64,000 bases of DNA from Trichosphaerium sp. ATCC 40318 (taxonomy: Eukaryota; Protista; Tubulinea): NCBI GenBank assembly GCA_038496445.1, contig JALMLS010000168.1:1-64000 (forward strand). The letters are read 5' to 3'. The number at the start of each line of letters is the position of its first letter. Within the stretch, counting starts at the first letter, position 1. Below the pieces are notes generated by a model, which was not told the DNA's origin, did not search any database, and saw nothing but the letters and a program-made list of their open reading frames with translations. Of this stretch, positions 11,630 through 44,930 are shown in pieces. The position numbers and the translations under genes are program-made.

Positions 11630-12400
11630 CTTTGGGTTGTGAGATTGATTTTTGTGGATATCCACCATGTAAGAATTGATGCTATACGCGTAGAAATACG
11701 CTTGATAGCTTGTATGTACCACGTACTATGTATTCAAGGCAGCAAAATTGTTTAACGGTTGACACAAATGTAATTCGGTTGCACCGTGCCAAAGCCTTTG
11801 TATGTATTTATTGAGCGTATTTAAACGCAACAGAGGTTCTATAGTTGACATTCAAGCGTTTGGGTGACGTTAAAGGGTGTTCAAGAGAGTACTCAGTTCA
11901 ACATAAACCAATTTGAAAAACAGTTGCACAACAGTTATCACCGTTGGCATGGCTATGCTGTCATAGGTTTTAGTGTAAACTGCATTTTACTCAGCTCAAT
12001 GTAAACCAATTTGAACCAAAGTCACAACTATCTGAATCACCATGGACAGGGCTACAGGTATTGTCTATCCCACAATTTATTTTTATTTGAGTTTTAGGTG
12101 TATAAAAGAAAACGAATTTATCGTGTTATCGTATTTGTAAAAAAGTACCATGAGCACTTATCATGTAAAAATTCTGAATCGATCTCAATGCCCAAAATCT
12201 GTCTTGGATGCGCCAAAGCTATAATGACCCCTGAAATAACTGACTAAGACCGTAACCTGGTAGCCATATCTTTTTGTAAAAGTTACAATGTGTGACACTC
12301 TTACCATTACTCGCAGCTTTCCTTAAGCCAAAGCTTGAACTTCACTGTAACTTGATTAATCTCGTAAGTAAACCAATTCTCACAATTTTCTTACTTCAGA
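11630..12400 (+). repeat. Dispersed intergenic element, copy 1 (core about 11877-12277)
   Basis: Core gtgttcaagagagtactcagttcaac...gtaacctggtagccatatctttttgt is nearly identical to the copies at 23.9, 30.3 and 44.0 kb. Outer limits are approximate. Confidence 0.95.
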
Positions 12401-12497
12401 GAGATTATTACTTTGAACCAAGGTCGTCAACGCAGACAGTTATATGCGCATTTCTTCTAATCAGCAAAATCGCAGCATTAAGAATGCGCAGATAACT

Positions 12498-12900
12498 TTA
12501 CAAGCTTGCTAGCAGTCCTCTCTTTTTACATAAGAGAGACGATGACAAATATTGCACCATTAAATATTTCACAACATGCAACAAGCTGTTGAAACGAGTT
12601 GGTACGGAAGGCTTAGTCACTTCTCTGGCTGTAAGGTAGGCTTCGTTGCAGGAATAGCGTTGATTGATAAAGTACAGGGTGCAAAACGTAGCGTATTCTG
12701 TTCTTATTTGACAAGTGTTTGCCTCTAGAGGATTACATTGTACCAAACAAACTCCTCATTGTTCTGTTTCAACCATTGGACTGTACTCAGAGTTAGCTTT
12801 TTTGGTTTGAGTGATGCCATGAGTTCTGTACATATTTTTTGTATTGCACATAGGAAGCCAAGTCTGAAACTCAGTATGGTGACGGAACAACTTTTTATGT
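12498..12900 (-). pseudogene. Possible decayed hAT-family transposase fragment
   Basis: Minus strand reads KLFRHHTEFQTWLPMCN (resembles the W-x-P-C-x-x-H motif) and later KPSVPTRFNSLLHVVKYL (resembles TRW/FNS). Interrupted by a stop. Confidence 0.3.
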
Positions 12901-13112
12901 CTGGCCGTAAATATCGGGATAACTTTTGTGGGTGAGAAGCACGCTTCAGCTCACATGAGATTTTTTAAAGCTGTGATTCACTCGACACGCGTTGGTACTA
13001 CCCTTTTGATCGTCAGCATGTCAAATAATGAAGAAATGTGGGTTTTGTGCAGTATTTCACGACAAGTGTTTTCAAGGGATTTCAAGTCAACAAAAACAGG
13101 TTACGTGACACG

Positions 13113-16100
13113 ATGATAAAGCCGCAACTCGTCATAGGCGCTGTACTTGTTTTATGCACCCTTTTCCAGGTCGCCACGTATGAAAAGCTTTCCGTTTTAT
13201 CTAAAGTAGTTTCTCAAGCTTTTACTTAGCTCTCAAATCACAGTACCGTTCCCAGAGTATCCAGACTCATTCTCTGTTGGTGTTGAGATAGTAGATCTAC
13301 AAGAGTCAACTACTCAAGCCGTCTACGAAGTGTTTGGTATGTAACAGAGCCGAAAAGCAAAAACCAATTGTTTTTCTGGTTTTTTGGGTTTATCACGTGA
13401 TAGCGCGATATTCCACCTTACCTACGTCTGACTGTTCTGTTTTTAGACTTTCCAAACCAAAGAGAGTACTACCAATCTACAACAAGTTTTGGTACCTTTA
13501 AAATTATAAAAAATTACGCAACGGTATGTAGTATAGTATATTATTATATTATTCGATAGCGCGCTTTTTTTAATCTTATTTTACTTTTTAGAATGAAGCA
13601 TACACAATACGTGACCACACGACTTGTACGGTTCAAGACGTACGTCAGTTAGAGGGAGATGAGAACGCCAAGATGAGAACGGTGGAAGAGCTATTTCTCT
13701 TTGGTCTTGATGCTGTACGATAAAACTTTTTCAAAAACGGTTTCGGTTTTTTTCTGATAATATTCGCTAGGACGTACCAGCAATTTATGTACCTGGCTTC
13801 GATTTTGTAAGAGGGATCCCTGCAAATGTGTTCAAAAGAACCGGTAATTCTACCGTTGATGGTGAGCTAGTAGAGATGCTTGATATCACATACTACTTTC
13901 CTAGACCAGACGAAAATTGGTAACCAACAAAGTTTTTTTGCTTTTCTTTTCACATATTTCTCCCGGTTTACTCACTTTAATTTCAGGCAATATTACCACA
14001 GCGATAACTTTACGCTACCACTGAAGTATGGTTCTTTTGCTTTTCACTTTACCCGCTTTATCTAGAATTCATAACAGACCTAATGGTTTTTTTTAGAGTA
14101 GAAGTTGATACTCACGACGGAGACGCATACGCTGACGCAACCGAGTATAATTTTTTTGGGGCCACACTCAGAGTAGATGATTTTGATTTTCAGGTACTTA
14201 GTTTATAAGGCGTACACGGTTTATCGCGTGTTTCAAGTAAAAAAAAAATCACGTGTTCATTCGAGTTTATTTTTGTTACAGATTGACGATAGGCTCGATT
14301 GTGGATCTCTCCAAACAAGAGAATTACCAACAATACCTCTCCAATGGTCTGCCACGATTGAAATTACCGATTTCGTTGCCAACACAACTCAGACCCTAAG
14401 TACGTCCGGGACAACAATTTTTGTTTGAAAATATTGTACGTAAGCACGTGATTAATTTATTTTTACGCTAGCTGAACATTACGACTATGGCGCAAATGTG
14501 TTTATGTTTGAGTGGCATATGAACCCATCCGCTGACTATACTCAGATATTCCGCTTAGATAAGGTGCGTACCAAGCGCAGCACGTAGTTATTGAAGTGAC
14601 CCTGCTGTTTCAACTACGCACTCTACAAATGGTTGTTCTAACTTGTTTGTCGTAGGGTGCTACTATCAGTCTTACAAGAACTGAAAATGATCACCTTTGT
14701 AAGATATCCAAGCTGGATGGCGCTGGTCTTGATATAACCAATCATACCTACCATCTCAAGACCTCTGCAGACTTGTGGCGGTTTGGAGAGTACAAAAACT
14801 CTTTTCATCTTCTGTTATGTTAAATATTTATGTAGGACATATGGTGAAGAGTACCAAGGTATGACTACTGTCAGAGGCAGAGACGTACATTATTGGAAGT
14901 CCTCCCCACCTGTACAAATCAGAAAACAAATCCAGTTTTATTTTTTTTGCTGTTGGCTCTTTTTTTGACTTCGTTCTCATGTCTTTAGATACGCACTGAC
15001 AGAAATGGCGAGATTGATGTTGTAAGTTACTTCTACTTCCTTGCAGAGCCTTGGTCCATCGGATACGTATTCCCAAATGGAACTGCTATTTCTGAAGCAC
15101 AAGAAGTGCCTGTAAGGTATTCATTTTTATGTCAATCAAAAACTGACCATGCCTCTTCTCTTTCCTGACTCAAAGAGGTTTTTAAAGCACCTTTGGTGTA
15201 CTTGTTACTCTTCGGCGTAATTATTTTTTATCGGATGAATTATTTAGTGATACCTTGAAAACTCTTTACTACTCAATTCTTTGGATGTTGGAATAATTCT
15301 GTTTTTTTTAGAGTTGATATACAAGGACGGCGTAGAGAACCTGCTGGCATTTGGGAACCTATGCATATCGTTTATGACGTAATTAACTTCTTACCATGGT
15401 CAGGAGAAAAAACACACCTCTTCCAGACACCTGATGACTTAGAATGCGAATTCCAAGACTCTCTATCGTGTATGTTGCCTGTCCTTGTTCTTAAACTCAT
15501 TAAAACTAACAACTTTATCATAGTCTCATGCTTACCTGGTTGCGGACAAAATGGTGTTTGCCAAATTGATAAATGTCATTGTAACCCTGGGTACACTGGA
15601 GATTTCTGCCAACTGCTAGAAATCCCAGTACAAACCACTCCTCCTTCACGTATGTCGATTTAATTTATCTATTTTTTTTATTTAAATGTTACTGTGATGA
15701 TCAACCCTCTTTCACGTGAATTTGTCACGTGTTAGAAGAACTTGTTGGCTCATAAGAGCTGGGTTGTTGAGATATTTTTGCAAGTGTAGCGAGTGGATTT
15801 TTTTGTTGACTTGCTGTTTAGTAGCAAGCACAAGTGAAGTAACAAATATTTCATGCAAGGGCCATACTGGAGCTATTATTGCACTTGTTCTATTCTTAAT
15901 ATTCTTTGTTATTATCGCTACAATGGCTTGCTGCGTTCTATGGAGATTGAGAAGGAGATTGAGAATAAAGTACGAATAGCTTCGTTTTTACTTTCTTTGT
16001 TACTAACACATCAAAGGGGAAAATCTAGTGCTTCTGCTTCTCCTGCTAAAGAAGATAAAGAAATGCATGTTGTTGTTGATGAAGATAAAAACGGTGAAAC

Positions 16101-16167
16101 CGGAGATGGAAACGGAGAGAAAAAAGAGGATGATGAGGGTAAACAAGTAGACCTGGAAGAAGAGTAA
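13113..16167 (+). CDS. Type I membrane protein with repeated LolA/ependymin-like domains and an EGF domain
   Basis: Signal peptide MIKPQLVIGAVLVLCTLF; two related units (PEYPDSFSVGVEI...VRGIPANVF and PTIPLQWSATIEI...VRGRDVHYW); EGF CLPGCGQNGVCQIDKCHCNPGYTGDFC; TM GAIIALVLFLIFFVIIATMACCVLW; acidic tail. Confidence 0.7.
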
Positions 16168-16643
16168 GTTGTTTTTATCACAATTTTATTCACCTATGCT
16201 TATTAACTTCCAAATTGTAGTTCACTTTGAGAGCACCTAATTCAAGTACTTATTGTAACAAAGTGTGTAAAAAACTCTCGTTTAAACAGAACGCATTGTG
16301 TTGATGTTGAAAAATAAATAAACACATATTATTTTCCATGTACCTTCGGCTTCCTCGAAAACTCCATCCTGCGTTCCTTCAAAATATCAACAATCGACAA
16401 ACAGAGCAAGAACGAATAGGATAGTAGCCAGAAAACGGGAATTCCCAAACTGAACCACCACAGGGGAATAACTTCTTTTTTTTTTTCATCATGTGTTCAA
16501 CTCATTTTGATTGAATTTTTTATTTTGTCCTTACAGGTAGCATTAAAATTATTCTATTCTTCATTGCGCCCAAATCTGAACTACAGGCGCAAAAACTATA
16601 TTCTCATGAGAAGTCATGAGGAAACTTGTTGTCAAATCAGTCG

Positions 16644-18158
16644 TTACAACTTTGTTGGTGCAACTTTGAGAAGAGATTCTACAAGTTTCGGTACTAACTT
16701 TGGTGAAACAGTTGATGGTCTATTCCTTGCTGGATTCTTTGCTTGCAATACTGTATTAACCATCAAGGGTGGTATACCAGAAACACCATGCAAAGCACCT
16801 GCACAATGAGTAAGATGCTACAATAGCAAATAAAAAAATGGTCCAGAAAAAAAACCTCAAAAGTTGTCTTGTTATTTGCGCTTACCTAGCAGTCCACCTA
16901 CAATCGCTGCATTTGTATCAGTGTCCCCACCTCCAAAAATTATAGTCTCCAAGGCTTCGGCATAAGGTGTCTTCTTCAAGAGGTGTGCAAACGCATGGGT
17001 GAACGCAATACAAATGTATCCTGTTGGTTGTAAGCGTTTACTTCATTTCTGATGTGATGTACCTGCATGAGGATGGAATGCTATTAAATTATCATCACGT
17101 GCATCAATTAACCATTGCTTAACTTCATCACATGCATTAGCGTCAGCCCATGTCTTGGCGACATCAAAAGCGCCTCTAAACGAAAAAAATGTGAGACAAC
17201 TTCTTTGTTTTTCAAAAACTGCTACGTACTGGGCGTCTCCAGGGTTATTAATTAAATGAGCAACTGCTATGCAATACGCTGATACAGAGTCTTTACATGA
17301 TTCATTAGGGTGGGATAAACTACTGTCTTCACGACAAATGAGTGCAATATCTTCTGGTGACAGCTAATGTTAGGTCAGCGATTTTGATGGAATAAATTAA
17401 GAAACAACTACTCAAACTCATACCTTATGACCCCATACTGCCAACGGACTACATCTCATTAAACTACCATTAGATTTGGATAACATAGCAAACTTTGAAG
17501 CTGCAGTCTTACATACTAAGGCAACGTATTACTCAACAAAGAAAATTAGAAATAGAAAAAAACGTGCCTGTAGCATATCCATTTTCTTTGATATGCTTCC
17601 TCCCATGGGTACTCTTGCTCATTCTCCGTCCAGCACCTAGAGTCTGGAATGTCGTAAAGCCCAAATCAAAAGGATCAGAGTCCACCCACTCACAGTACGC
17701 CTTTGCAACCTAAAAAACGGAATATTCAGCAAACGGCTTAACACAACTCGCTTGCAAAGCGTACAGGTTCGATATCCCATTGTGTAAGGTTGCACAAAGC
17801 AGTTGCGAGCGTAATTGTTGCTTCTCCGTCATCTGTGACTTGGCCTTCGATTTTTTGTGACGTTCATAAATAAAAAAGCTGTAGTGTACCTGGACCAAGT
17901 CGCTGAAGGCCTCCACCGCTCAATTTCATTGCTATCTACAAAATCAGTTTCTCTTTAAACCGTACAAAACAACGTACTTTGGTCTCCGATAGCGTTGGTT
18001 TCCTTCCTAGCTTCTCTAACGGCGCACCAGCTGCGTCTCCACAGCACACGCCAAGCATTGACCCAAGAGCTCTTTCAAAGAGTCCACGCTCGTCTATTTC
18101 TTATTGTGGAGTTAGCGCAGCTCAGTAAAGTTACAGACATACGTTGCTGTTCAGCCAT
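16644..18158 (-). CDS. ADP-ribosylglycohydrolase (DraG/ARH family)
   Basis: GSMLGVCCGDAAGAPLE, PGQVTDDGE, SNGSLMRCSPL, SHP and GGDTDTNAAIVGGLLGALHG reconstructed across introns. Confidence 0.92.
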
Positions 18159-18369
18159 TATTCGTTATTTGAAAAAAAAGTACAGTTTACACTAATTGAC
18201 TCGTACCATGAAGAAAGGTAAGCACGTGTGAATGACCTCTCAATATAGCAACAATTACGAGCGAAAACAGCGTATTCGTTTATTGTTTTTAGTGAATGTC
18301 AACAGAGTCTTTAGATTTCATTAAAATCTTCGTATTGACAATATCTAGAACACTAGAGGCTCCAAGTAC

Positions 18370-19409
18370 ATGACGGAGGCTGGATACGGAGCGAATAACG
18401 TTGTAAAGCTAAACGTTGGTGGCACGCGCTTTGAGACATCGCAATCTACGTTACAGAGCCATGGCGAGAATTTTTTAACGTTATTATTACAAAATGCGCA
18501 AAGTGGCAGAGTGCCTGTATTCCAAGACAAAGATGGCTACATCTTCATAGACAGAAGTGGTAGAAAATTTGAAGCAATATTAGAATATTTACGCACAGGT
18601 ACGTGCGAAACGCGTTAATTTCACTTTGATGGACTACGAATACCGTAGAAACTGCGTTAAACCCTTTATACAACACTTTGTTTAAATTCCGTAAAAAAAA
18701 TCATTAAACCGACGTTTTAGATGTCGTTGAAGTACCTCCTGGCGTCACATACTACCAACTGCTAAGAGAGTTTGACTTTTATCAAATAAACGTCAACCAA
18801 CACGCAAATAATGCTAGTAACGACACAACAATAGCAGAGGCAAGAGCGTGCGTATTTTTATCCACTTGGCGCTCTTGATGTGATCATAAAAGCCTGACGC
18901 TGTACTTTATTTTTTCTTATTATTCTGTTTTAGGTTCAACCCAGACGCTGCGCGTTCGTTCTATTGGAATTCTCTGCCAGTTGTTCAAGCCAAAACATGG
19001 TTAGATAATCACTGGCCACGTATGTACGCCCTCTTGAAGACACAACTACAACTTGGGTGCGTGTCAAACATCAAAATAACTTAATTTCACTGAAGGACAT
19101 TTTGACACATGTCACAAAAATGTCGTTCACTTGTCCGACTTGTACTGCAAGAAATTTTAATCTTATATGATTTGTAGGTATACATATATGTCGTATGTTG
19201 ATTTCAATGAGCTTCAAATATTTCAACAGCCTTATCCTGAAGGTGTTGATCGAGATGCTTTTCACGTTGCTTTGGCGAGATGGGTTAAGCGTTTGTATGG
19301 ATTAAAGTTTGATAGACGTCAAGCAAAATGGCAACGAGGTTATGAGAATATGATTAGCCTTGATTTAGGTTTTGATGTTCTATCAGCGCCTGAACATCCT
19401 AGTTTATGA
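18370..19409 (+). CDS. BTB/POZ (KCTD-type) domain protein
   Basis: VVKLNVGGTRFETSQSTL...DKDGYIFIDRSGRKFEAILEYLRT...LLREFDFYQI. Confidence 0.9.
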
Positions 19410-19855
19410 TTAAACAATAATAATAACAGTGTAAATAAAATTGATACATTATGCAAAAAAAAGCGTCGCCGACACAAAAAAGCATTCAGCGCGCGTAGGA
19501 GAAAACTATCAGTAACGTACGGAAGTTACAGTTTTTACCATGGCCTTTTCAGGTTACATTGGAATCGTAACCACTTCCTTACAGTGCTACCTCTTTTTTT
19601 ACAACTCAGAACTTTGTTTGTGTATCAACAAACGTCTTGCCTTCTCTAGAATACCTCACGGTGAGACGTGGTTTTAATGTGCAGTAGCCAAAGTACTAAA
19701 AATGAACTGTACAAATATGTAACTGTCTGTTTTGGAGATTTTTTGTCTACCTCTTATCATCGAGTCTACAAAAAAAACCAGAAGAGTTTGGTTTATGATA
19801 CAAGTGCATTTATTTACATTTTAGTTTACAAGAAGAATGTTAGAGTGAAGCAGAG

Positions 19856-22955: not shown

Positions 22956-23679
22956 TGCTCTCGATATGCTCTGTTTAGTTTCGGAACAAAATGATCCAAT
23001 TGGCTTAATTATAAACGTCAAAAAAACATGACGTTTTGATCACGTGATAGTTTTTTTGTCTGGTAGGCTGTGAAGTGCGCTCTGGAAGCGTTCCGCATGT
23101 TAAGGCATTAAGAGCTCAATGCACTGATTGGTATGTTATACAGTTTACTAGGAGCAGGGCACATAAGTGTGTCAAGCTTATGGTTTGGTGTAATCCTCTT
23201 GGCGCTATTTAGCTATTTATACACAACCGAACCTACAGTTGCACTAGTAGGTGGTATCGCGAATGGTTTTAGCTTAGGAACCCTTCACGCGTCGATTTGA
23301 AGCGCTAGGCGTCAGCTTCAATAAAAAAACCGTTTCTTTACCGCGCTCTGCGTGTTCATTAGTGTAATATCACTTCTATCAAAGCGACTAGTACGTCAGT
23401 AAGCCTATATGTCGCTTTGGAGTGTTTCCGTAATGTGTCGGTTTGCAAAACGTGATTGAGTAATTTTTTTGGGTAAAGCGTTATTTGTGCGTTAATGTCG
23501 TCCATTTATCTATTATACGCGTACGCCTACACATTTCTAGTTCTCAAGCAGGTTTCGAGTGCTTTAAAGCTATTTCGTAAAATCGTTCGTTTCGTTGCTT
23601 TGCCTTTTGGGAAACGTGAAGGTAGTATTAAAACAACCGATTAGCGGCGTAGTTAGATGAATGAAGTTGGCGCGTTCTT

Positions 23680-24457
23680 GTGATGTTTGGTCCTTTTGTG
23701 GATAGCACCTATCCAGTGCGGACCGGACGCTGTACACTTAGAAATATGCTTGGGAGTTAGCATATACCATGTACAATGTATGTAATGCAGTAATAATTTT
23801 TAACGGTGACACAAATGGAATTCGGTTGTTGCACTGTTCCAAAGCCTTTATATGTATTTATTGAGCGTATATAAACGCAACAGAGGTTCTGGCGTTGACA
23901 TTCAAGCGTTTTTGGTGACTTTAAAAGGTGTTAAAGAGAGTACTCAGTTCAACATGAACCAATTTGAAAACAGTTGCACAACAGTTATCACCGTTGGCAT
24001 GGTTATGCTGTTGTAGGTTTTAGTGTAAACTGCATTTTACTCAGCTCAATGTAAACCAATTCGAACCAAAGTCACAACTATCTTAATCACCATGGACAGG
24101 GCTACAGGTATGTTCTATCCCACAATTTATTTTTATTTGAGTTTTAGGTGTATAAAAGAAAACGAATATATCGTGTTATCGTATTTGTAAAAAAGTACCA
24201 TGAGCACTTATCATGTAAAAATTCTGAATTGATCTCAATGCCCAAAATCTGTCTTGGATGCGCCAAAGCTATAATGACCCCTGAAATAACTGACTAAGAC
24301 CGTAACCTGGTAGCCATATCTTTTTGTCAAAATTACATTGTACAAACCTTAACGTTCAACCAACCAAGTCATGAGCACAACTCTATGCTACTTCATTAGC
24401 GCTTTACACAACAACATACCAAAATAATTCTCATTATTTTCTTACTTCAATAGTTGT
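23680..24457 (+). repeat. Dispersed intergenic element, copy 2 (core about 23929-24327)
   Basis: Direct sequence match to copies 1, 3 and 4. Confidence 0.95.
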
Positions 24458-24902
24458 TTTGAAGAATTACGCGCTTGTGAACAAATGACTCTAGAGAAAT
24501 ATAATTCAATAAAATGCACCATCTTGTATTCCTTCGCGATTATTACATCCTTCAAGAATCAATTGGAAGCCTTTACGAGGAGCTGAAACATCAAGTGTAC
24601 CTATCGTTTATGCCATAGTCTAGATAGTTCGATACATACTGTCAACCTTCTATCTTTGCATAAGTGGGCGTAGTCACAGCAACTTAAAAAAGTGCCGTGC
24701 TCTAACTTAGACTAAATCCCGTATGGTTTTCGAACTCATGGTTCACAGAGTTTCCAGGCGTTTTACTAGAGACATGTCAGTTCGAGCATCAGACCCACTC
24801 TTTTTTCTACGGGTGAATTCAGTATTTTTTCGGCTTTTTTGTAAAACGCCGACGGGCAAACTTAAAAAACTCCGACGCCTCTTCATTTTCCATTCAACAA
24901 CA

Positions 24903-26125: not shown

Positions 26126-27403
26126 TCAGACAATGTTTCTCCATTCAAGGAAATGCGTCGGAGACATATCTATTATCACGCCTCTTTTGTTAAGAGCATC
26201 TCTACAGTCGTATGTTATACCATCATAATTCACATAGAGTCTACGCAAGTTAACCAGTGATTCAATAACTTTACTCGAAATACTCGATTCACTAATATCT
26301 ATTTCTCTGACACTATCAGCAATTGGTTCAAGCCACTCATCTGTTGCATATGTACTTGATAAATAAATGGTTTCAACGCCTTTGAGACTCTCCATACATG
26401 TTCCTGTAATATTTCTACAGTGATCTAGGTTGATGTGTTTCACACCAGAGAGTAGAATAATCCAATCATCTGTTGCGTTTGTGTAAGATAAATCAATGGT
26501 TTCAACACCCTTGAGACACTTCATACAAGATGATGTGAGAGATTTACACCCCATCAGGTCAATTAGTTTCACACCAGAGAGTGGAGTAATCCAATCATGT
26601 GTTGCGTTCAAAAAGGCTAAATTAATGTACCTGACACCAACAAGATCTTTCATACATGTTCCAGTTAACCGACATGCAACCAGTTGAATATTTTTTACAC
26701 CCTTCAAGCTTGATACTCCTGAGTCTGTAACGTTACAATTAGTCAAATCTATTGAGTGTACACCAGCCAAGGCTGAGACACCCTTGTCCGTGATTCGTGT
26801 AAGAGACAAATCTATGGTATGTACACCAGCCAATGCTGAAACTCCTTCGTCAGTGATGTGCTTACAGCCATGTAAATAAATACTGTGTATGCCGGCTAAC
26901 ATATACAACACATTGTCAGTAACCTTACAAGTGTCTAGGCTGATTCTTGGTATGCCGACCAACGCTTTAATGCCATCATCTGTTACTTGTGGGAGGTAAT
27001 TCAGTGAGATATATTTGAGGTGTTTTGAAGGTTGGTCTCCACAAAAATTCTTCAACCCATCATCTGTGATGTGCTTGGTCTCAAAAAGTGAGAGCGAGGC
27101 GACACCAGAAAGCATAGCTAGGTCTTCGTCTGTTCCACCTTCCCAAAGCTCAATTTCAGTGTTTTTCAGGAGCGGACTTCCTGAAATGAGCGAACAGCTC
27201 TCGCTGGATTGAACGTAGATTTTATCGTAGCCAACATGATGGTGAATGACGTCTGATAAACGTGTACAGCTTTCAGAAACGAGAAATCGATCAGAACGGC
27301 CAACATACGATAATAAATGAGCGATTATCTCTGTTGGTATGTCTAATAGCGTAGTTTTGTCGCTAGGCTTTAAATGTCTCGTGTTTGCTTCTCTAGAAAG
27401 CAT
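26126..27403 (-). CDS. F-box / leucine-rich-repeat protein (intronless)
   Basis: F-box LLDIPTEIIAHLLSYV followed by about 14 repeats of the type ITDEGVSALAGVHTIDLS. Confidence 0.9.
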   Translation of the reverse strand: MLSREANTRHLKPSDKTTLLDIPTEIIAHLLSYVGRSDRFLVSESCTRLSDVIHHHVGYDKIYVQSSESCSLISGSPLLKNTEIELWEGGTDEDLAMLSGVASLSLFETKHITDDGLKNFCGDQPSKHLKYISLNYLPQVTDDGIKALVGIPRISLDTCKVTDNVLYMLAGIHSIYLHGCKHITDEGVSALAGVHTIDLSLTRITDKGVSALAGVHSIDLTNCNVTDSGVSSLKGVKNIQLVACRLTGTCMKDLVGVRYINLAFLNATHDWITPLSGVKLIDLMGCKSLTSSCMKCLKGVETIDLSYTNATDDWIILLSGVKHINLDHCRNITGTCMESLKGVETIYLSSTYATDEWLEPIADSVREIDISESSISSKVIESLVNLRRLYVNYDGITYDCRDALNKRGVIIDMSPTHFLEWRNIV

Positions 27404-27908
27404 TATGTTGAGGTATTTGGCAATTGCTGTCAACCTTACTTAATAAAACGCACTTAAACAAAATAAGCTACAGCTACACGTGACACATCAACATATCGCA
27501 ACACAGTGTACTTATGAAAATAGCGGTAGGGTGTCTATCAAAAAAGCTTTCTGATACGCTACACGTGACAAATTCAATTTCAACAAAGATAAAAGTGGCT
27601 TGTTACTTTATTAAACATATGTACTCCACGTGTGAAGCTCATGTTTCTCGCTTACTTTGTGTTATTATTAGCGTATTCGTTTGTTAGAAACCTTTATTGC
27701 ATTCTTCTACATCTGTTATACGTATTGCAAGGGAGAAGAAGCTCTTGTTAAAGCAAGGTGAGAAAGCTGAAACAAGTGTCCTCACAACATTTTATTTACA
27801 GTTTTGGTACAGGGGCCATACAACAAAAGACAAATATGTAACTTTTACAGTAGCTTCCTAACAGTTTAGGATTGAGCCATTTGAATAAACCGTTGCTCTA
27901 GGTTTGTT

Positions 27909-29189
27909 TTAAGCACTATCAGCAACAATATTATCTATGAATCCATGAAAATTACAAGAAGCCACAAGCAGCAAGATGTCCACATCAACTTCAGGTCCAC
28001 AGAAATCGGCCTCTTCTTCTCCTCCACTATCTTCATTACAACGAAGTGTTAGGATGTTACTTATAATAAACGGACGCCAATTACTAACTCCTGAGAGGCA
28101 AGCAAAGTTAGTAATTACAGCAAAAGACTGGGACAAATCCTCTTGGCAATGAGGTTGTGGACTTACCTGTGATGATACCTAGTTCTCCTAGTTGTGCAAC
28201 AAAAGCAAGGGTTCCTGTTTGATTTCTTTCTTCAAAGTAAGCGCATTTGTTCTGGGCTGTTCCATCAATGAAACACTTTACAAAACGTCCAGCTGGCATT
28301 TGTGTATCCGACAAATTTGTAGTTGTCCATCCACTACACTTTTTAGCTGCCATTCTTAACGCCTCTGCAAAGGCCTTTACACTATCCATTGAACATGCAA
28401 CCACTTGATCGCCCAAGTAGTTTGGTACACCAATAGTATCTTCATTAAATTTGTCAAATAAACGTGACACAAATGTTGACATATCTCCTTCAAATACAGA
28501 GTATAGCTTTTCCCAGTTGATTTTAAATGGCTTATACTTTGCAAGCTCTCCAGAGATTAGTGCCTCAGCTTTCGCTTTTGCCAACGGAAAATCTGATAAC
28601 AGTGTTGTGAGGAGAAGTGAAATACGATCTCTTGGAAGTGATGCAATTTTATCCTCCAGAGACATATTCGCTGTATCAGGTTCACCAAATGCCATAGGCT
28701 CTGATACATCTTCGTAAGCTACCCTTAATGATATCGTGAGCTATGAAGAAGAACACCGGAGTGAGAAAACGTACGTTTCACCAATAGATACAAAATGATT
28801 CGAAGAAACACTCGCAAATACTTGTATTGTAGACCAGTCAGTATGACTATCGAGATATCCTCTAGCACCATCTGAATAGTATAAACTTTGAGAGTCATAA
28901 GCCAGTAGAATCATCTCAGGTCTTTCAGAAATTTAGTCAGTTTTCGCTTGTTTTGTGCTGGTAAAGACTTACCCGAGTATTTCATCTTGTCTTACTTGTC
29001 GAAAGTATGCAGTGCTTTTATTTGTATTACTATACTACAACAATGGTTAGTGTTGGTGAGGTTTTCATGAAAAATGGACACCTTAGACACAATTTCTTCG
29101 ATAGTACCGTTTTCGGATACTTCTACGCGTGGAAACCTTTGTGGGTTGATTTTGGTGTATTGTGTTGCTTTCTTGCGTGGTTCTTCCAT
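27909..29189 (-). CDS. MIF4G-like helical domain protein, multi-exon
   Basis: The C-terminal VSRLFDKF...GTLAFVAQLGELGIITG / VSNWRPFIISNIL...PEVDVDILLL resembles MIF4G helices. An intron GTAAGT...TACTAAC...CTCAG joins the two ORFs in the track. Confidence 0.55.
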
Positions 29190-29749
29190 TTAGCGCCTTT
29201 ATTTACTACCAGTGCTTTTAAGTGGTATTTGACGTGCTATTTATTGCCAATACAAACAGTACGAACGAAGTTGACGAAACCTGGTTGGGTTTTAAAAATG
29301 GTTGGCAACCATTTTTTTTTTCAACAAAACTTCAAATCGTTTGACATACAACCCGCCTGTGAGAAATAGTACAGTAGTGTATGTGCTTTGATCGTACCGT
29401 AAGTTGTTTGGTACCTGATTATGCGTGCTTTCTGACAGAGTTACTCACTAAAAAAGCACTTATGGCTTTGTTTTTGTGGGGAATTTGTAAACACGGATGA
29501 TAGTTAAAGAGCTTGTAGAATTTCCATGTAATATGTTCCTACCGCTTAATATGTCATGCGACACCACTCCGTTAATGTGTCATGCGATACTTACAAACAG
29601 CGTCAAGTGTTATAAGATTGTGAAGCTATTTTAAGATGCCGCTTTAATAAAAAATAGAGTTCAAAGGCTGCCTTAACTGTTTTTACCGTAAACAGTGATG
29701 AAAACTCTTGTTTACCGTAAAACGTTTCGCTGAATGAGTAAGCTAAATT

Positions 29750-30782
29750 GGAATACCAAGTAGCTTTGTCTACTTGCACTGTATGAGTAAAACCAAAGAA
29801 TGAAATTTCGTTTTGATATACATATCACTCACATTTGCTCTGTTCTGTAAAACGTGTTTGTCAGTCAGTACCACAACCAAATAATAGGAATTAGTGCATA
29901 ATATACTATATTAAGTACTTTGAAGCGTTTTGGTGACATGTCGGTTCAAAAAACGTGGTTGAACAGTTTTTTTTTCTGAAACAAGAGATATGTTGTGAGA
30001 TTATATCTTTTTGTGGATATCCTGTATCCGTTGAGAAACCGACGCAATATGCATAGAAATACGGTCAATAGTTCATACGTACCATGTTCAACGTGTTAAA
30101 CACAAAAATAATTTTAAACAGTTGACACAAATGGAATTTGGTTATTGCGCTGTTCCAAAGCCTTTGTATCTATTTATTGAGCGTATTTAAACACAATAAA
30201 GTACCTAGCGTTGACACTCAAACGTTATAACATACTTTAAAGCGTTTTTGATGACTTTAAAAGGTGTTCAATAGAGTACTCAGTTCAACATGAACCAATT
30301 TGAAAAACAGTTGCACAACAGTTATCACTGTTGGCATGGTTATGCTGTTGTAGGTTTTAGTGTAAACTGCATTTTACTCAGCTCAATGTAAACCAATTCG
30401 AACCAAAGTCACAACTATCTGAATCACCATGGATAGGGCTACAGGTATGTTCTATCCCACAATTTATTTTTATTTGAGTTTTAGGTGTATAAAAGAAAAC
30501 GAATATATCGTGTTATCGTATTTGTAAAAAAGTACCATGAGCACTTATCATGTAAAAATTCTGAAATGATCTCAATGCCCAAAATCTGTCTTGGATGCAC
30601 CAAAGCTATAATGACCCCTGAAATAACTGACTAAGACCGTAACCTGGTAGCCATATCTTTTTGTCAAAATTGCATTGTACAAATACCTGACAGCACGCTG
30701 TGCTTCATCCAATAATGCAGTCTATAACGATAGCACTTGCGCGACTGTAATCGCAACAAATCTCATTATTTTCTTATTTACG
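29750..30782 (+). repeat. Dispersed intergenic element, copy 3 (core about 30264-30664)
   Basis: Matches the other copies and shares a longer left arm with copy 4. Confidence 0.95.
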
Positions 30783-31350
30783 AAGCATGTTGGTAGACAA
30801 ATGATGAAAACCCGCAGTGGCGTAGAACGGCAGCCCTGTAAAATGTCACTTTACAATAAGGAGTTGGTCTAGTAGAATAGATATACTCTTGGCTGCTTAC
30901 CATTTGCTCTGAACTTGCTATAACAAACTAAAAGAAAAATAAACTTGTAATGTAGTATAAGGTTTGTGATAGCTACACTGACTACATGTCCTAGCCTAAT
31001 ACTACAAATTCTGCTTCAATATGACATTTTTAAACAGTATGCCATTTCTGCTTAGTGCATTAAATAGACTGACTTGTTGCACTTCTTGTTTAGAAGCATG
31101 CAACAAAAAATTTCGAGAATTCACGAGAAATACCTTTCGGGAATGTTGGGCAAAAAAAACTACACAAAAGTCGCTCTTTCTGTGATTTCAGGCGTTATTA
31201 ATTTGCTTTTTCGGGTTTACACCATATAACGTTACTACTATATTTAACGTTAGAAACTACTGCGTACAAATTTTTGGCGGTTTGTATCACGTGATACAGT
31301 ATTTTTATTTCAAGATAAACGTAACATAAAAACAAGGTTCGCAGTATATA

Positions 31351-36634: not shown

Positions 36635-36862
36635 TATAAGAACAGATGTATACAATATTTCTATTTAAATAAAAATATACTACACTATGGCACACCTAGA
36701 ATTTACAACAAAAAAAATTCACCATAGACTAAGTTTTGCAACCTAATCGTACTTTATTCTTAAAAAACAAAAATAGCAAAGTGTAGCGTGAAAATCTGTA
36801 CTAATAAACACACCTACTACAAGCAACTAGGTAAATGGGGGTACGAATTCATACCAAGTTTA

Positions 36863-37569
36863 TTAGGTAGTCTTTTTTGCTTTCGCACTTTTACAAGAAG
36901 CTTTTTTTGTACACAATACGTTACATGGCCATGTAGCACAGAAAGCTGTGATTAAAATAAGCAAACCGATACCATACACAAATGAAGGAACTTTCCATGA
37001 TGTTCTATGATTATTAGACCACTCAGCTTTCGATTCAACAAGCTCTTTTCTTAAATTTTCAATAATAAACTCAAGCCTTGCTATATCTGAGACATCTATA
37101 CTCTTTAACTCTACTTCGAATTCTCTAATCGTCGAGAGTACTGATACTTGAAATACTAAAGAAGCTTTGTCGTCCTAAGAAAACTCAGTAAGCTATCGCC
37201 TTGAAGTGTACCACTTACAGATCTAGTGACAGCTACAGAAGCTTGGGTGTTATTTTTGGCTAAACTTGATTCTAATAAATCAACAAAGTCTTCTGGTGTT
37301 TGTATGATGCCCTTTGAGATATCCTTCGTGTCACTTGCTTGTATAACAGCTTCGTAGACCCTGTAGCTCCTATGATTTGCAAAAATTAATCACGTGACCC
37401 TCCATATACCAAAGCGTTACCTTGTATGTTGTAGGTGTAAGCGAAGTTCGTCATCTTTGCTGGTTAGTTTTATAACGGAATCCTCTAAGAGACCTTCGAA
37501 AGAAACTGCACTAACTATCGAAGCAAAACATAATATAGTTACAATGGAAGTGAATGATATCATCCTCAT
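36863..37569 (-). CDS. Small type I membrane protein (signal peptide, coiled coil, C-terminal TM)
   Basis: MRMISFTSIVTILCFASIVSA; IARLEFIIENLRKEL; TM FVYGIGLLILITAFCATW; two GT-AG introns. Confidence 0.7.
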
Positions 37570-37816
37570 ACTTTTTAAACAATGACAATTGAGTAGCATA
37601 CTTTAAGTCTAGTAACATCAATATGGTTTTGTTAAGTCATATTACCATTTCCGAACGGACGTGTTGTACGTTATCAAGCTGATTTCGTTTTGTCCTAGTT
37701 CATCAAGTTAAAACAGATGCTTCTTCTAATACAGCGCATCAAAACAGAGCAACTAACTAACTTCTGTAAGGAAATGTTTTTTGCCTTGCTTGTCAATGAA
37801 TGATTCATTCGGCTGT

Positions 37817-39743
37817 TTATGAAACAATATGATATTTATTATGAGTGGTAAATTCCGTCAAATTACATCTGCTTGATGTTCTTTCCTTTAAAAGCTTTAT
37901 AGAAGCATTTCTTAACTTTTTTGTTCTTATTCTTTGTTTTTTAGTAGAGGCACGTGCAGGTTCTGTTAAAGTATCCCACGTGATACTCTAATTGCGGAAT
38001 ATTTGTACGCAAGAATATACAATACCATTCGTCTACATCACAGTGCCATTCTTTTGGTCCTGTTTGACGGCAAGGGAAGAGAGGATCACACCTTTTAGAA
38101 CCTTAAGAAAAAGAAGATTTTTAAACAAGCACGTACATGCACTCGTTGTTAGGTCCTACTGTAGGGTGAACACATGCTACCTCTGGTGGCGGAGGTGTTG
38201 GAGCGGTTGTTGTTGGTGGAGCGGTTGTTGGTGGAGCTTGTACACTGACTTGAGAAGGTGAAGGAGGTCCACAAACTGCAGGTGTTCCGGCGCTAAAAAC
38301 CTTTAATACAAATTGAATGCCATGTCACTACTCACCGAGGTCCACCACTGTGAGATTGGTATGAATTTCCAATAGTAACATCATTTACTACTAACCACAT
38401 GTCATAGTCACCTTGTACGTCCCAACATACTAGCAAACTTTAGGAGCTTATTTTAATTGCTTATAGGTTTTGGAACAAATTGAAAAAAGCTCTTACCTTC
38501 CCATGAACATGTAAATTCTTGTCCATTTGATAGTGTCGTCGAACCAGTAAGTCTTCTCTCGCTTCCGTCAATAAACGCAGCTCCCTAGTCGCAACATTAG
38601 CAAAGTTCGAAGTCAATAAAGTACAAAGTGAACTTGGAAAAAAAAAGTAGAGAACGCGCTTACTGAACCAGTGCAAGAAAGTGAAGGTGGTGTGATACGG
38701 CCACCAGGATGATCAAAAGACCATGTAGTATCGTGAATGGTATCAGGCATACGAGGTGGATTCGAAATAGTAGTAGAAACAATAGAGCAAGTGCCTAGGG
38801 ACAAAATTAGAATTCTTGTTTGGGCCAAGACAGCGTCTTTCTTTCATAAAATCTTCTTTTTGTACCTGGCAATACTTGACCATCAGGTACAACACTGTGC
38901 CATGCATCTCCTCTAGGGACACAGCAAAATTGCGTAAGGACTACATCGAGTTGTGACTCAACAGTGCCATCCATCTCAAGTTGGATGTTATCTACTGAAT
39001 CAAAAACAGTGTATGGTGGTTCTAAAGGCAAACAAATGTCTCTAAAGCACCAGTGAGAACAACGTGTACAATAATTATCAAAGAAAACCAACAAGTTTCC
39101 TACTCCGATGCAAACAACGCGAGCAACAAACAAACATTATAGCGAATGAAAAAGATTTTGGTCACGTGACCAAAAAATCTATCAAAAAAAAAAGTTCTTG
39201 TGTCGTACCTTTCGCCAATAAACGCAGGTAGAGCAAGCGTAGAAGTACTGGTTGTACCGCCTGAAGTTGTTATTACTCTAATAGCATGTTCTCTATCTGG
39301 GTTATCCTCTATAAAATTCCAGCAACCTACAAAGCAATTAAACTACTCCAACTCCCTAAAAACTACAAAAGAAGCATAGAAAGCTTTTTTTTTTGTTTTG
39401 AATCTTTTTTTTTGTCACGCGTACCGCATCCAATCTCTCTTAAATTGGTTCCTCCTATGTTACTGTACTCAATATCACACGTGCCAAGAGACATAGCAGC
39501 AGTGTTACATTGTAAACTACCAACTACAGCACGCGTTGTGACCTCCGGACCGCCTGTATTATCACAATTGAGCTGACGAGTGCCAAGAAATGAAGCATCT
39601 GTCATAGGAGCACTGCTTTGACTTCCAGGCGTTTCGCATCGTACAGGAGGTGAGAAAAGGGTAAGTAAGTCGATAGCGTATGGAGACTGTTGGGAGTGTA
39701 CTAGAGATAAACACGACAGTATTACAAGTAGAATAATGCGCAT
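37817..39743 (-). CDS. Secreted Cys-containing protein with PPTT mucin-like linker (tandem paralogue A)
   Basis: Signal peptide; PYAIDLLTLFSPPVRCE...QFCCVPRGDAWHS...CWDVQGDYDMW; APPTT repeats; CDPLFPC...WHCDVDEWYC. 3' end approximate. Confidence 0.75.
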
Positions 39744-40099
39744 CTCGGGGATATCTCGAACACTTGAAGAATATAAAAGAACAAAACTTATGAAAGACTT
39801 TTTTTTTTTTTGTTGAACATTTGCAGACTCAAGTCTTAATTTATGGTTGGGGTAAACATGTGCACCAGTTTGTACCCTTGGTATTTATCTTGAGATTGTG
39901 AGTTTGTATTTTGGTAGTTCGTAACTCTTGAATGTGAAAACTGCAAAAAACAAGCGAACGCTGATCTTTTTTTTGGTGGCACGTGTTCCTTGAACTAAAC
40001 AGAACAAAAAATTTTTACGCTTTTTGTTTTAATGTATTTTCGTTTGTCTTTGATTTTAATGCGTCACATGCCGACTACAGGCCTTGTTTATAGTATTCG

Positions 40100-42276
40100 C
40101 TTGTGTAGTAATACAAAAGACGTTAAATGAGCAATTCTATACTAGTAGAAGCAGGTACACATTCGGTCATAGTAGCTCACAGTGTACTCTGTTGGTGGGC
40201 TGTTCACACGAATGAAACTACAATACCATTCTGATGTATCACAGTTCCATTTACGAGGGAAATTGAAGTCAAAGACTTCGCAAGGGAAACGTGGATCGCA
40301 TCTAGAAGTATATTACGTCAACAGAAAGATGAAGAGGCGAAAATCGATTTGTGAATATTCAGAAAAAACAACTTTTGATAAACGTACACACAACTGCCGG
40401 TAGGTCCGACTTGAGGAGCCACGCAAATCATCTCTGGTGGAGGTGCCGTTGGAGGTTGTGTTGTTGGAGCCATAGTAGTAGGAGGTAGAGTTGTAGGTGG
40501 CTGAGTGGTTGGAGGCTAAAAATGTTTTTAAAAAAGCGACCAGATAAACTATATGCTACCTCTGTTGTTGGTGGTAACGTTGTTGGAGGAAGTGTGGTTG
40601 GTGGAAGTGTAGTTGGAGGCAACGTTGTTGGCTGTAGCGTCGTTGGAGGTTCAGTAGTAGGTGGCTAAAAACATAAGAACCGATTTCAAAACTAGTGAAT
40701 TTGTACCTCTGTTGTTGGAGGTAGAGTTGTAGGTGGTAACTGAACGGTGATTGTAGTTGGCAGAGGGGCAGTACAGTGATCCTCTGTTGCGAATCTGCCA
40801 AAGAAAAGAGGTAAGAATTTGATAGTCTGGACGTCTCGCATGACGTTTTGTGAGTTGTTTTTTATCGCACCTTGAACCGCCTGAGTGAGAGTTGTAAGTA
40901 TTACCTACAACAGTATCTCTGACTTCCGTCCACATATCAAAAGTTCCAGGTGTGTCCCAACAAACTATATACCAGTAAGGCTAACGCAAACTAAATACCT
41001 GTTTCAGTACTCACCTTCCCAACTACAAGCATAAGAGGCGCCAGATATAAGATTGGTAGTTCCAAAAACTCCACGTTCGTTACCTTGAATAAACGCAGAG
41101 CCCTAGTAAAATATAAGTTACGTCATGAGAAATACTACAAAAAAAGCACTTACAGCACCACCAGTACAAGCGAGTGTAGGACTGTTTATGATTCCAGCGT
41201 CATGAATTAACATCCACTCAGTAGTGTGACTTGTTGGAGGGAATGTTGGAGGGTTATCGATAGTCATCGTGATCGTTGAACAGTCGCCTTATCAATAGTA
41301 AGACTTTTTGTGGTTAGTTATTTGCATACCTGCAGTCAAATCGGCAGACGGCGTAATTGAATGGTAGGCGTCTCCACGTGGTACGCAACAAAATTGCTCA
41401 ATGACATCGTCTAGCTGGGACTCTGCTGTACCATCAATAACCAAAGTAACGCTATCAAGTGAAGATAATACAGATGTTGGCGCAGAGATAGGAAGACAGT
41501 GGTCTCTGTTGTTTGAATAAAAATGTAAGTAATTTTTTTTTGACCATGTGACGAATCACGTGGAGGGCGAATATCTTTGGTTGGTGTATATTAAAAAGAG
41601 TACCTTCTACCAACAAAAGATTGGGACGTAATTGAAGTTACACTTTCTGTAGCGCCTGAGCGTGCTGTGACTCTAATGTCGTGTAATCTATCAGGGTTTT
41701 GTTCTATTATACTCCAACAACCTTTATACAAATAAATAAATTAAACTCCAAAGAAACAACTCAAAAACCGCTTTATAAAGGAGTAATTAATAAAGACTAC
41801 ACTCCGCAATAAAAGAAAAGATACGAAAACAATCAGCAAGCTGAAAAAAAGCAAAACAACAAAAACGGCTTTCTGTTTTTGTGGCTTTTTTGAAATCAAA
41901 ACAAAAAAAAAAAAAGATTCATTTCTTCATCTTATAAAAACAACGCTATCTTACCGCATCCATTTGCTAATAAATCAACACCGCCAATATTACTATAATC
42001 ATAACTACAAAAACCAAGAGAACCAGACGCGATATCGCATTGTAGAGAGCCAACAAGAGCACGTGTTGTCGTTTCTGTTCCTTGTGTTGTATCGCAACCA
42101 AGTGTTCTTGTACCCAAGAAACTAGGGTTATCTAGAGGAACGCTCATGGCAGGCCCTATTGTTTCACATCGTAGTGTAGGTGTAAAAACTGAAAGTGTAT
42201 CTATAGCGTAAGGAGTCTCCGGTTGTGAAGCTACTAATGTAAAGGAAAACAAAAGGAGGAGTACTAGCCTCATCAT
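40100..42276 (-). CDS. Secreted Cys-containing protein with expanded (LPPTT)n linker (tandem paralogue B)
   Basis: PYAIDTLSVFTPTLRCE...QFCCVPRGDAYHS...CWDTPGTFDMW; CDPRFPC...WNCDTSEWYC; intron positions largely shared with paralogue A. 3' end approximate. Confidence 0.75.
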
Positions 42277-42690
42277 CTCGGGGTATCTCTTTTTGCTTTG
42301 TGAAAAGAACACGAAACTTTTTGACACTGGTTTTTGTTCGCTGTTTTTTTTCAAAACAAAAGGGAATTGTAATACGAAGGTTGATGTTAACCTGTGCTTT
42401 GAAAGTTCAACTTGTTCGCCTTTTTAAGACTTCTACTTGTACGCTACTCATACCGCTTCGAGAGCACGTACAGCCACGTGATAGTTGCTATGTAGTACAA
42501 GTAGCGCACTCAATTTCCAAGTTAAAAAGCTGTTGACTAGCTCTTGTTTATGGAACAAAAACAAGCTATTTGTAGAAGGGGGGGGATTGTGGCTTTATTT
42601 ACATCTATTTTCATAAGGGTGAACTGGAGTTGAAGCACTGGAAAGGTGTTTTGTCGAAGAGCTTCAGTTGACTTGTCTTTTGGTTTTTTT

Positions 42691-43459
42691 TTACTGTTTC
42701 TCGACAGTCTTAAAAGTCCTCAGATCCTGAGTACTTGCTTCATACAACCTATAATATTTGTGTGGAGCTTCAATATCTTTGAAAGGGAATTGTCCGTTTA
42801 CTTCATGCTCGGCATATGCAATCTCTCCAATTAGTTTATATCCACATTTTTTGCAAGCTGCGGCACTAAACTTGGTTGAACAAGGACACAGTGCACCCTA
42901 TGGCTATAATTATTTATTGACATGATTAAAGCGAGGGTTACCTTATATCCAAGGTCTGTGATATGCTCAAAATTAGTTTTGTAAAGTTGCGTGGCAATAC
43001 CACGTCTCGAGTGATTTTTATCCACAGCAATCCCAACCCATTTGACCCAAAACCCTTCTTTACTAGCTTCAAACTTATGTCGTGGATTCCATTTACTATA
43101 CAGTGTTTCGTATATTGAAGAATACTCTGACGTAACTCGCAAACTGGTAAAAATAAGTCACGTGACAGTAGTGAGTTTGGCGTGTACCATTTGTACTTTG
43201 AGGGTGCCTCTAACGCCATATCTAACGCTAAACGAACACCTACTACGTTCCCGGAGGAGTTTTCTATAGCTACAGTTGATAAACCTTGAGAAGTGATGGA
43301 TGGGAATAGTTGTATAAAATAATCTTCAATTTCTTCCCTAGATGCCCCAACCACTTTACACGTAGTTTCTCCAGCATAAAAACGATCTGTAATTATTTTT
43401 ATAGCTTCTGCTGTATGTTTCGTTGTCAAGACAGTGTAAGAGTAGCTTTGAAGATGCAT
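42691..43459 (-). CDS. GNAT acetyltransferase (insect AANAT-like)
   Basis: FYAGETTC, STVAIENSSGNVVGVRLA, IAVDKNHSRRGIATQL (acetyl-CoA motif A). Confidence 0.85.
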
Positions 43460-43896
43460 CTGATGTGTTTATGATGGTTGTAACAACTGTTATCTGTACA
43501 AAAATGTCGGCTTTTGTTAAGTATGGGAAAATGTGACACTTGTGGTTTTAATGTTGAGCACGCAAAAATTAACAAAGCATTCAATGAAAAAAACAGGCTA
43601 TTCGGAGTGGTAAATTCAGTGTCTGTTGGTGACTATTGGGTTGGCTCACAATGAAAAGAATGTACGTGGGCAAGTTTAACGGTCATGTTGTACTTGTAAC
43701 GCTACTTCTGCTGCAGAACCAGAATTGTGTTCACAACTTTGCTTGCCATACATTTTGGTGAGGTATTCATAGCTGATAAACAGTACGCTATTATAACAAC
43801 GTGGTTTGAGTGGTTTACATTCATCAATAACACAATGGAACTGTTCTCCTACCGAGAAATAGGAAACTTGCTGCAAGACTAAGGGTCACAACAAAA

Positions 43897-44930
43897 CAAC
43901 TATTGAAGTAAGAAAATAATGAGAATTGTTTTGTATGTTGTCGTGCAAGGCGCTAATGAAGTAGTATAGAGTTGTGCTCATGACTTGGTTGGGTGGAGAC
44001 AGCAAACGTTAAGGTGTTTGTACAATGTAATTTTGACAAAAAGATATGGCTACCAGGTTACGGTCTTAGTCAGTTATTATTTCAGGGGTCATTATAGCTT
44101 TGGCGCATCCAAGACAGATTTTGGGCATTGAGATCATTTCAGAATTTTTACATGATAAGTGCTCATGGTACTTTTTTACAAATACGATAACACGATAAAT
44201 CCGTTTTCTTTTATACACCTAAAACTCAAATAAAAATAAATTGTGGGATAGACAATACCTGTAGCCCTGTCCATGGTGATTCAGATAGTTGTGACTTTGG
44301 TTCGAATTGGTTTACATTGAGCTGAGTAAAATGCAGTTTACACTAAAACCTACAACAGCATAACCATGCCAACGGTGATAACTGTTGTGCAACTGTTTTT
44401 CAAATTGGTTCATGTTGAACTGAGTACTCTCTCGAACACCTTTTAAAGTCACCAAAAGCGCTTTAAAGTACGTTATAACACTTGAATATCAACGCTGGGT
44501 ACTTTATTGTGTTTAAATACGCTCAATAAATAGATACAAAGGCTTTGGAACAGTGCAATTACCAAATTCCATTTGTGTCAACCGTTTAAAATTATTTTTG
44601 TGTTTAACACGTTGAACATGGTACGTATGAACTATTGACCGTATTTATATGCATATTGTATCGGTTTCTTAACGGATATAGGATTATCCACAAAAAGATA
44701 TAATCTCACAACATATCTCTTGTTTCCGAAAAAAAAAAAACTGTTCAACCACGTTTTTTGAACCGACACGTCACCAAAACGCTTCAAAGTATGTAAGATA
44801 GTATATTATGCACTAAGTCTGATTACTTGGTTGGTGGCACTGACTGACAAACACGTTTTGCGGAGCAAATGTAGCCAAATTAGGTGATACGAATTTTATT
44901 CATTGGTATTACTCATACAATGCAATATGC
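43897..44930 (-). repeat. Dispersed intergenic element, copy 4, inverted (core about 44035-44440)
   Basis: Reverse complement of copies 1-3, for example acaaaaagatatggctaccaggttacggtcttagtcag. Confidence 0.95.

Follow-up and report, generated by a model that had tools for sequence, protein, structure and literature searches.

The 64,000-nucleotide (nt) stretch of DNA analyzed here (positions 1 to 64,000 of contig JALMLS010000168.1, assembly GCA_038496445.1; hereafter the window) comes from the amoeba Trichosphaerium sp. ATCC 40318 and contains four copies of a dispersed repeat. We propose that these copies probably belong to a family of orphan small-RNA genes of the RNA polymerase III (Pol III) type, which spread by segmental duplication with some recombination. 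Each repeat would be a single gene, built like the U6 genes of this genome, in a family of small non-coding RNA genes that is dispersed but clustered locally. The box CCCACAAT with its T-run, ~62 nt ahead of the start, and a TATA box, ~30 nt ahead of it, would drive transcription, and the non-coding transcript of ~145 nt would end at a run of four or five T, which implies Pol III. Selection would retain the RNA and its promoter while the flanks decay, hence the near-identical core with fading flanks, and a gene this small would fit in the large divergent intergenic regions where the copies lie. Judged from the sequences, the family is real, under selection and low in copy number; its gene architecture is of a known kind, and its RNA has no Rfam match. 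A previous sequence-only reading of the window had called the repeat its best candidate for an undescribed system, which overstates the case, the RNA alone being without assignment. That reading had also listed a multicopy non-coding RNA among its candidates, and it is this candidate that we favor, as the conserved center coincides with a U6-type promoter, the predicted transcript and the T-run.

The four copies were found where the sequence-only reading had placed them, within 33 kb: c1 at 11636-12399 (+), c2 at 23678-24453 (+), c3 at 29774-30790 (+), and c4 at 43892-44925 (−). For c1 and c2, these coordinates delimit the shared part of the unit, which in c1 starts at GTTGTGAG and ends with the AG after a 17-mer discussed below. 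The part of c3 common to c1 and c2 begins at 29992, and the preceding 29774-29991 has a counterpart only in c4 and in a copy on contig C18. Indeed, left edges differ by subfamily: A/B-type copies start at GTTGTGAG, those of c3, c4, and the C18 copy lie ~220 nt further out, and those of the C-type copies ~480 nt further out. In a repeat search, 11859-12239, 23967-24289, and 30019-30626 each paired with 44077-44684 at 96-98% identity. A four-way alignment gave ~690 near-identical columns, outside of which the flanks align between some pairs only, and the core, described earlier as near-identical, is 96-99% identical among the four copies. However, this is not a four-copy element. When the window’s own assembly (70 Mb, 642 contigs) was searched with a 682-nt query, ~40 pieces of the genome matched, and the best-kept block was present at ~25 loci, ~15 of them full units. 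These full and partial loci are clustered on contigs C94, C146, C18, and C237; alongside the four copies in 33 kb of the window, C94 has seven within 120 kb, C146 has five, and C18 has three.

All 13 full copies tested for promoter spacing carry the box CCCACAAT with its T-run and the TATA box exactly 32 nt apart, start to start. The TATA box of the family reads TATAAAAG, with the variants TACAAAAG or CATAAAAG in five copies. A T-run lies 169-176 nt past the TATA box (five T in 10 copies, four in 4); no run of four occurs earlier, the longest inside the predicted RNA being of three. The promoter occupies 12069-12108 (+) in c1 (box 12069-12076, TATAAAAG 12101-12108), 24119-24158 (+) in c2 (box 24119-24126, TATA 24151-24158), 30456-30495 (+) in c3 (box 30456-30463, TATA 30488-30495), and 44208-44247 (−) in c4 (box 44240-44247, TATA 44208-44215). 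Placing the start by the U6 spacing, we infer the two ends of a small RNA of ~145 nt at 12131-12275 (+) in c1, 24181-24325 (+) in c2, and 30518-30662 (+) in c3, which would end in the five T at 12271-12275, 24321-24325, and 30658-30662, respectively. The predicted RNA of c4, at 44038-44185 (−), would be 148 nt long owing to one 3-nt insertion, with its five T at 44038-44042. Copies with an intact promoter differ in the RNA region by 1-10 substitutions and at most six indel columns, whereas most of the five copies that lack both box and TATA have accumulated far more changes, with as many as 51 substitutions or 23 indel columns, and have, by their sequence, decayed as pseudogenes would. One promoter-less copy, C94c, goes against this trend and falls within the intact range (5 substitutions, 6 indel columns).

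The conservation profile follows this anatomy. A neutrally decaying repeat should diverge evenly, and from the conserved center the sequence-only reading had inferred selection or ongoing gene conversion; the region-by-region profile that we computed shows strongly uneven divergence and bears out that the center is under selection. Between two deep subfamilies, A/B-type and C-type, identity is 59% far upstream, 74% at −280 to −63, 90% from the box to −1, and 95% over the predicted RNA (~150 columns up to the T-run); it then drops to 70% in the 16 nt past the T-run and 39% in the spacer, recovers to 92% in the 17-mer island, and is 37% beyond it. The corresponding values among the four window copies are 79, 96, 98, 99, 88, 55, 91, and 41%. 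The best-kept stretch spans the U6-type promoter to the Pol III-type terminator and ends there. An alignment of 14 copies showed sharply conserved blocks alternating with free spacers. The flanks had been said to persist while fading gradually; they do decay, but unevenly. A coding exon was ruled out as the source of this conservation. The longest open reading frame (ORF) in the core has 49 codons, conservation continues past stops in all frames, and substitutions by codon phase (12/8/12, 13/12/19, and 8/4/5) showed no three-base periodicity. We also discarded an apparent 40-42 nt GT..AG intron before the TATA box, which is the box-to-TATA interval. One element, ATATCTTTTTGTG, is found twice per unit, in c3 at 30024-30036 (at the shared region's left edge, ahead of GGATATCC) and at 30653-30665 (as the terminator region), and likewise in the other copies; it may be the remnant of an older head-to-tail arrangement, or chance.

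The genome’s own small nuclear RNA (snRNA) genes provide the standard against which the family can be read. We located at least 16 U6, at least 30 U2, 5 U5, 7 U4, and at least 10 U1 genes; they are dispersed and multicopy, clustered at 1-30 kb spacing and often found as pairs 1-2 kb apart. The U6 genes (loci among L067-L083) carry CCACAAT with a T-run at −62/−61, TTTAAAAAT at −30, a box-to-TATA spacing of 31-32 nt, and a terminator of seven T. A MAFFT alignment places the U6 and family promoters in register, with G 30518 of c3 opposite the U6 +1. In ~330 kb of scanned sequence, the arrangement of box plus TATA was found only at U6 genes, family members, and two related sites. The family resembles the U6 genes in its CCACAAT box and T-run at about −62, its TATA at about −30, the distance between them, and its T-run terminator, and also in being multicopy, locally clustered, and best conserved from box to terminator. 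It differs from them in the RNA, whose sequence has no relation to U6 or to any Rfam family, and in the terminator, which is of four or five T instead of seven; moreover, the U6 genes lack the conserved blocks that the family has up to ~1 kb upstream and the 17-mer ~115 nt downstream. In the U2 genes, the CCACAAT box is at −55 and the TATA-like box, a weaker one, at −27, and both U2 and U5 genes have a 3′ box, AAAGAAAAACAA, 10-25 nt past the gene. This 3′ box is not present past the family units, so Pol III fits the family better than RNA polymerase II (Pol II). These snRNA promoter rules (CCACAAT box, TATA, T-run terminator, and the 3′ box for Pol II snRNAs) could be used to find further small-RNA genes in this genome.

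The two related sites have only the promoter in common with the family. They lie in loci L012 (C161:132865-136270, minus strand from ~383) and L019 (C146:111663-114917, minus strand from ~1145) and share with each other ~130 nt upstream, the box, and the TATA; the box-TATA module is common to them and the family, and the sequence past their predicted start is unrelated to it. The C161 site contains AAAACCCCTAAACC ~95 nt past its TATA, which recalls the template of a telomerase RNA for TTTAGGG-type repeats.

Several observations weigh against the proposal of Pol III-type genes. In the U2 genes, which are presumably transcribed by Pol II, the distance from a similar box to the start is shorter by only ~7 nt, which makes spacing by itself a weak guide to the polymerase. 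Block-wise conservation reaches 200-1000 nt upstream, beyond the known need of a U6-type promoter; the conserved motifs in this region, up to ~1 kb, include GTGGATATCC, AATGGAATTCG, two AACCAATTTGAAA boxes, and a palindromic ACGTTT..AAACGT. None of these upstream boxes was found near the U6, U2, or U5 genes examined, which speaks against enhancers in common with the snRNA genes. The 17-mer past the T-run, 92% identical across subfamilies, is not explained by a Pol III gene. The predicted RNA of c3 folds no better than 200 shuffles of it (z = +0.5), and the consensus fold is weak (alifold −4.1 kcal/mol) and without compensatory changes. A double change was seen in 1 of 21 pairs, in a degraded copy, and the block is too uniform for covariation to be tested fairly; the fold is notable only in that nt ~20-37 might pair with the ~15 nt directly preceding the U-run to form a terminal stem. 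Finally, no Rfam family matched the window at the gathering score, and permissive scans (E up to 10), run on a full copy and on the isolated RNA sequence, returned only noise (E ≥ 0.85). On these covariance-model scans, a known RNA was rejected, among them U1, U11, U6atac, 7SK, Y, vault, small nucleolar, and spliced-leader RNAs. A likeness to three U1 motifs was dropped as well, since canonical U1 genes are found elsewhere in the genome. Two metagenome scans yielded no relatives, their single match being a chance one to a bacterial vWA gene.

The copies spread as DNA segments: contig C514 matches the c1 locus at 92% identity over 2.2 kb, downstream DNA included, and the unit of the C18 copy is followed directly by 99 nt from the gene located 1.1 kb beyond c3. 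Duplication of segments of ~1-3 kb, at times with pieces of neighboring genes, would account for such copies, which would also occasionally recombine with one another. Ongoing gene conversion had been suggested from the sequence alone, and recombination between copies is indeed visible in the sequence of c4, a mosaic that matches c3 at 95% on its left and c2 at 92% in the spacer. Outside of family members, the upstream parts of the unit were not found in the genome, leaving no larger parent element. Small contigs C514, C468, C239, and C283 repeat stretches of C237, C146, and C94 at 92-99%, family copies included. The C468/C146 pair is 99% identical and the C283/C94 pair 96%; judging from their sequences, these small contigs are either haplotigs or recent segmental duplications, and copy counts are inflated by them.

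The 17-mer TTCTCATTATTTTCTTA invites another explanation. It lies at 12377-12393 (+) in c1 (two mismatches, followed by CAG), 24428-24444 (+) in c2 (exact, followed by AATAG), 30760-30776 (+) in c3 (one mismatch), and 43909-43925 (−) in c4 (exact). Every family copy, even those without a promoter, has it or a near variant 102-131 nt past the T-run, a range that widens to 67-131 nt if rearranged promoter-less copies are counted, and in 11 of 12 copies it is followed 5-14 nt later by an AG. The 17-mer is not confined to the family: at up to one mismatch it has 199 matches in the genome, with patterned variants, versus 3 for a reversed control, and only ~10 of its 33 exact matches are in the family. 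One match, at 46005-46021 (+), forms the branch/polypyrimidine part of a 55-nt intron (45989-46043) in the EF-hand gene to the right of c4, an intron that we consider verified because the loop DTNKD/GGISVDEF is restored by splicing only. This genome-wide distribution rules out that the 17-mer is a transposon end, and a noisy intron harvest did not support it as a generic intron 3′ consensus. It may be a strong acceptor signal, the end of an intron in a 5′ untranslated region, or something else. We considered that the unit might be a spliced Pol II unit, in which an snRNA-type promoter makes a leader of ~33 nt, ending at the invariant boundary between CAT and GTAAAAAT, ~33 nt past the predicted start (near 30550/30551 in c3). 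In a cis form, the leader would join the acceptor made of the 17-mer and AG, and the unit would be a portable cassette of promoter, leader, and intron feeding a downstream gene; in a trans form, it would encode a spliced-leader RNA. Several features fit this: GTAAAAAT is invariant in 18 alignable copies (the rearranged C18b excepted) and is a donor of the same type as in the verified window intron, the acceptor side resembles that intron, and, as in evolving introns, the 5′ part and the 3′ signal are conserved around a middle that varies freely. The stretch AUCUUUUUGUG also resembles, loosely, an Sm site. Spliced-leader RNA genes of kinetoplastids, nematodes, and others are likewise multicopy with an snRNA-type promoter, and their RNAs of ~100-150 nt have a short 5′ segment leading to a consensus donor GT, a U-rich Sm-like stretch, and an end at a T-run. 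However, splicing does not predict the collapse of conservation right after the T-run; the 3′ box of the genome’s Pol II snRNA genes is absent, there is an AUG within the putative leader, and past the acceptor lies no consistent reading frame or conserved exon. Donor-site scoring was non-discriminating, its training set being contaminated, and the papers searched held no report of spliced-leader trans-splicing in Amoebozoa or Heterolobosea. We consider a spliced Pol II unit unlikely on balance, and it is very unlikely that the family encodes a spliced-leader-like RNA whose ~33-nt leader, up to GTAAAAAT, is joined in trans to messenger RNAs or in cis via the 17-mer. Were the leader reading true, the 17-mer, with its 199 near-exact genomic copies, would be a preferred acceptor signal, in a lineage of amoebae without described leader trans-splicing.

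A dispersed, multicopy, non-coding, intergenic repeat could be a non-autonomous mobile element (a miniature inverted-repeat transposable element (MITE), or one that is Helitron/DINE-like, introner-like, or like a short interspersed nuclear element (SINE)) that captured an snRNA-type promoter and has a preference for promoter regions. SINEs typically have a Pol III promoter, and the intron-3′-like right end recalls introners. CORE-SINE and V-SINE repeats even combine a conserved center and diverging ends with a Pol III promoter, but theirs are internal tRNA-type promoters accompanied by tails derived from long interspersed elements, target duplications, and thousands of copies, none of which is seen here. 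In agreement with the earlier reading, we found neither terminal inverted repeats (terminal 20-mers agree at 10-11 of 20 positions at best, where the null has a mean of 9.9 and a 95th percentile of 12) nor target-site duplications (no flank duplication >5 nt at the copies), which argues against a DNA transposon or MITE. Also as reported there, the copies have no poly(A) tail, nor do they have an A-rich or simple-repeat tail or a terminus common to all. A SINE or retroposed copy was rejected too: the unit has no tRNA-like part, and its external promoter and host flanks are copied along with it, which excludes retroposition. The Helentron/DINE candidate of the sequence-only reading is unsupported for lack of termini, target-site duplications, and a partner element; the right end is the pyrimidine-rich 17-mer plus AG and not a hairpin with CTRR, and the ends differ by subfamily. 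With only ~25 loci, no autonomous relative, upstream parts confined to the family, co-duplicated host DNA, strongly uneven divergence, and the unit present in all haplotig-like pairs with no empty site seen, a mobile origin is unlikely. It is also conceivable that the unit acts as DNA and is conserved for protein binding instead of for an RNA, as a shared module of promoter or enhancer type, as a chromatin boundary, or as an origin of replication or centromere-type unit. The short motifs conserved in blocks up to ~1 kb upstream, the lack of an RNA structure signal, and the position between divergent genes would suit such an element. Nevertheless, ~150 nt at 95% identity across old subfamilies far exceeds what binding sites need, and the limits of the best-kept block coincide with promoter and terminator. 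Since ordinary snRNA genes cluster likewise in this genome, the four-copy clustering is not evidence for an origin, centromere, or boundary, and the window itself is AT-rich (35-40% GC), gene-dense, and of no unusual composition. Nothing supports the origin, holocentromere unit, or chromatin boundary put forward earlier, and we regard a DNA-level element as quite unlikely. The repeat is no evidence, then, for a new mobile element, origin, or centromere unit, which removes a false lead; as regards a subtelomeric repeat, no telomeric repeats were found at the window start. Lastly, the copies might be neutral segmental duplicates whose centers are kept alike by ongoing gene conversion alone. The mosaic structure of c4 and the 99% likeness of the window copies in the center speak for this, but the center is still 89-96% identical between contigs whose far-upstream parts are near saturation (~59%), conversion has not preserved the promoter-less copies on the same contigs, which have decayed, and the conserved tract always has the same functional limits. 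Conversion as the sole cause appears highly improbable.

If the family does consist of Pol III-type genes, this amoeba would have an abundant small RNA that no database recognizes, made from at least 13 intact genes, a number comparable to that of its spliceosomal snRNA genes. The candidates for its role are an RNA of a vault-type or Ro/Y-type particle, or a lineage-specific snRNA-like RNA, and with the family there would be concrete genes to consider as the source of such an snRNA or of the RNA partner still missing from the vault or Ro particles. Among the genes of this amoeba are at least six major-vault-protein loci and two TROVE-domain loci, and vault RNA binds the TROVE protein TEP1 (PMC12547018). 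Vault and Y RNAs resemble the predicted RNA in length (~90-150 nt), in their Pol III-type genes, often in several clustered copies, and in a fast-evolving sequence that databases miss outside vertebrates; the terminal stem that the 5′ part may form with the 3′ end, together with the vault and TROVE proteins encoded, adds to the likeness. On the other hand, inspection alone saw neither internal A/B boxes nor a Ro-binding bulged helix in the family, covariation lends the terminal stem no support, and the fold lacks significance. By analogy, a vault-type or Y-type RNA is a reasonable guess as a candidate identity and does not amount to membership.

As for the genes around the copies, the repeat had been said to lie always between head-to-head genes. 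This stands for the four window copies, all located between diverging genes by ORF strand, with neighbors assigned by ORF strand and Pfam being PH(−) and EGF(+) around c1, RhoGEF(+) to the right of c3, and EF-hand(+) to the right of c4. However, a 134-codon open frame at 28965-29366 (+), without a Pfam match, is located between c3 and the minus-strand gene to its left, and if this frame is real, c3 is not in a strictly head-to-head gap. Flanking-gene orientation around the other family loci is ambiguous, as judged from ORF strands alone, which are mixed there. The orientation of the copies themselves carries no information, because any element placed between diverging genes points at one that is co-oriented with it. 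Earlier labels of MIF4G, COMT, and GNAT for some neighbors were not reproduced, having no Pfam support in the exons tested; ORF 26129-27439 (−) is an F-box/LRR gene by its homologs and not MIF4G. Tandem 129-nt repeats at 26298-26656 lie inside this ORF and are probably LRR units. Tandem 129-nt repeats also occur at 60944-61386, in 3.4 copies with 71% identity.

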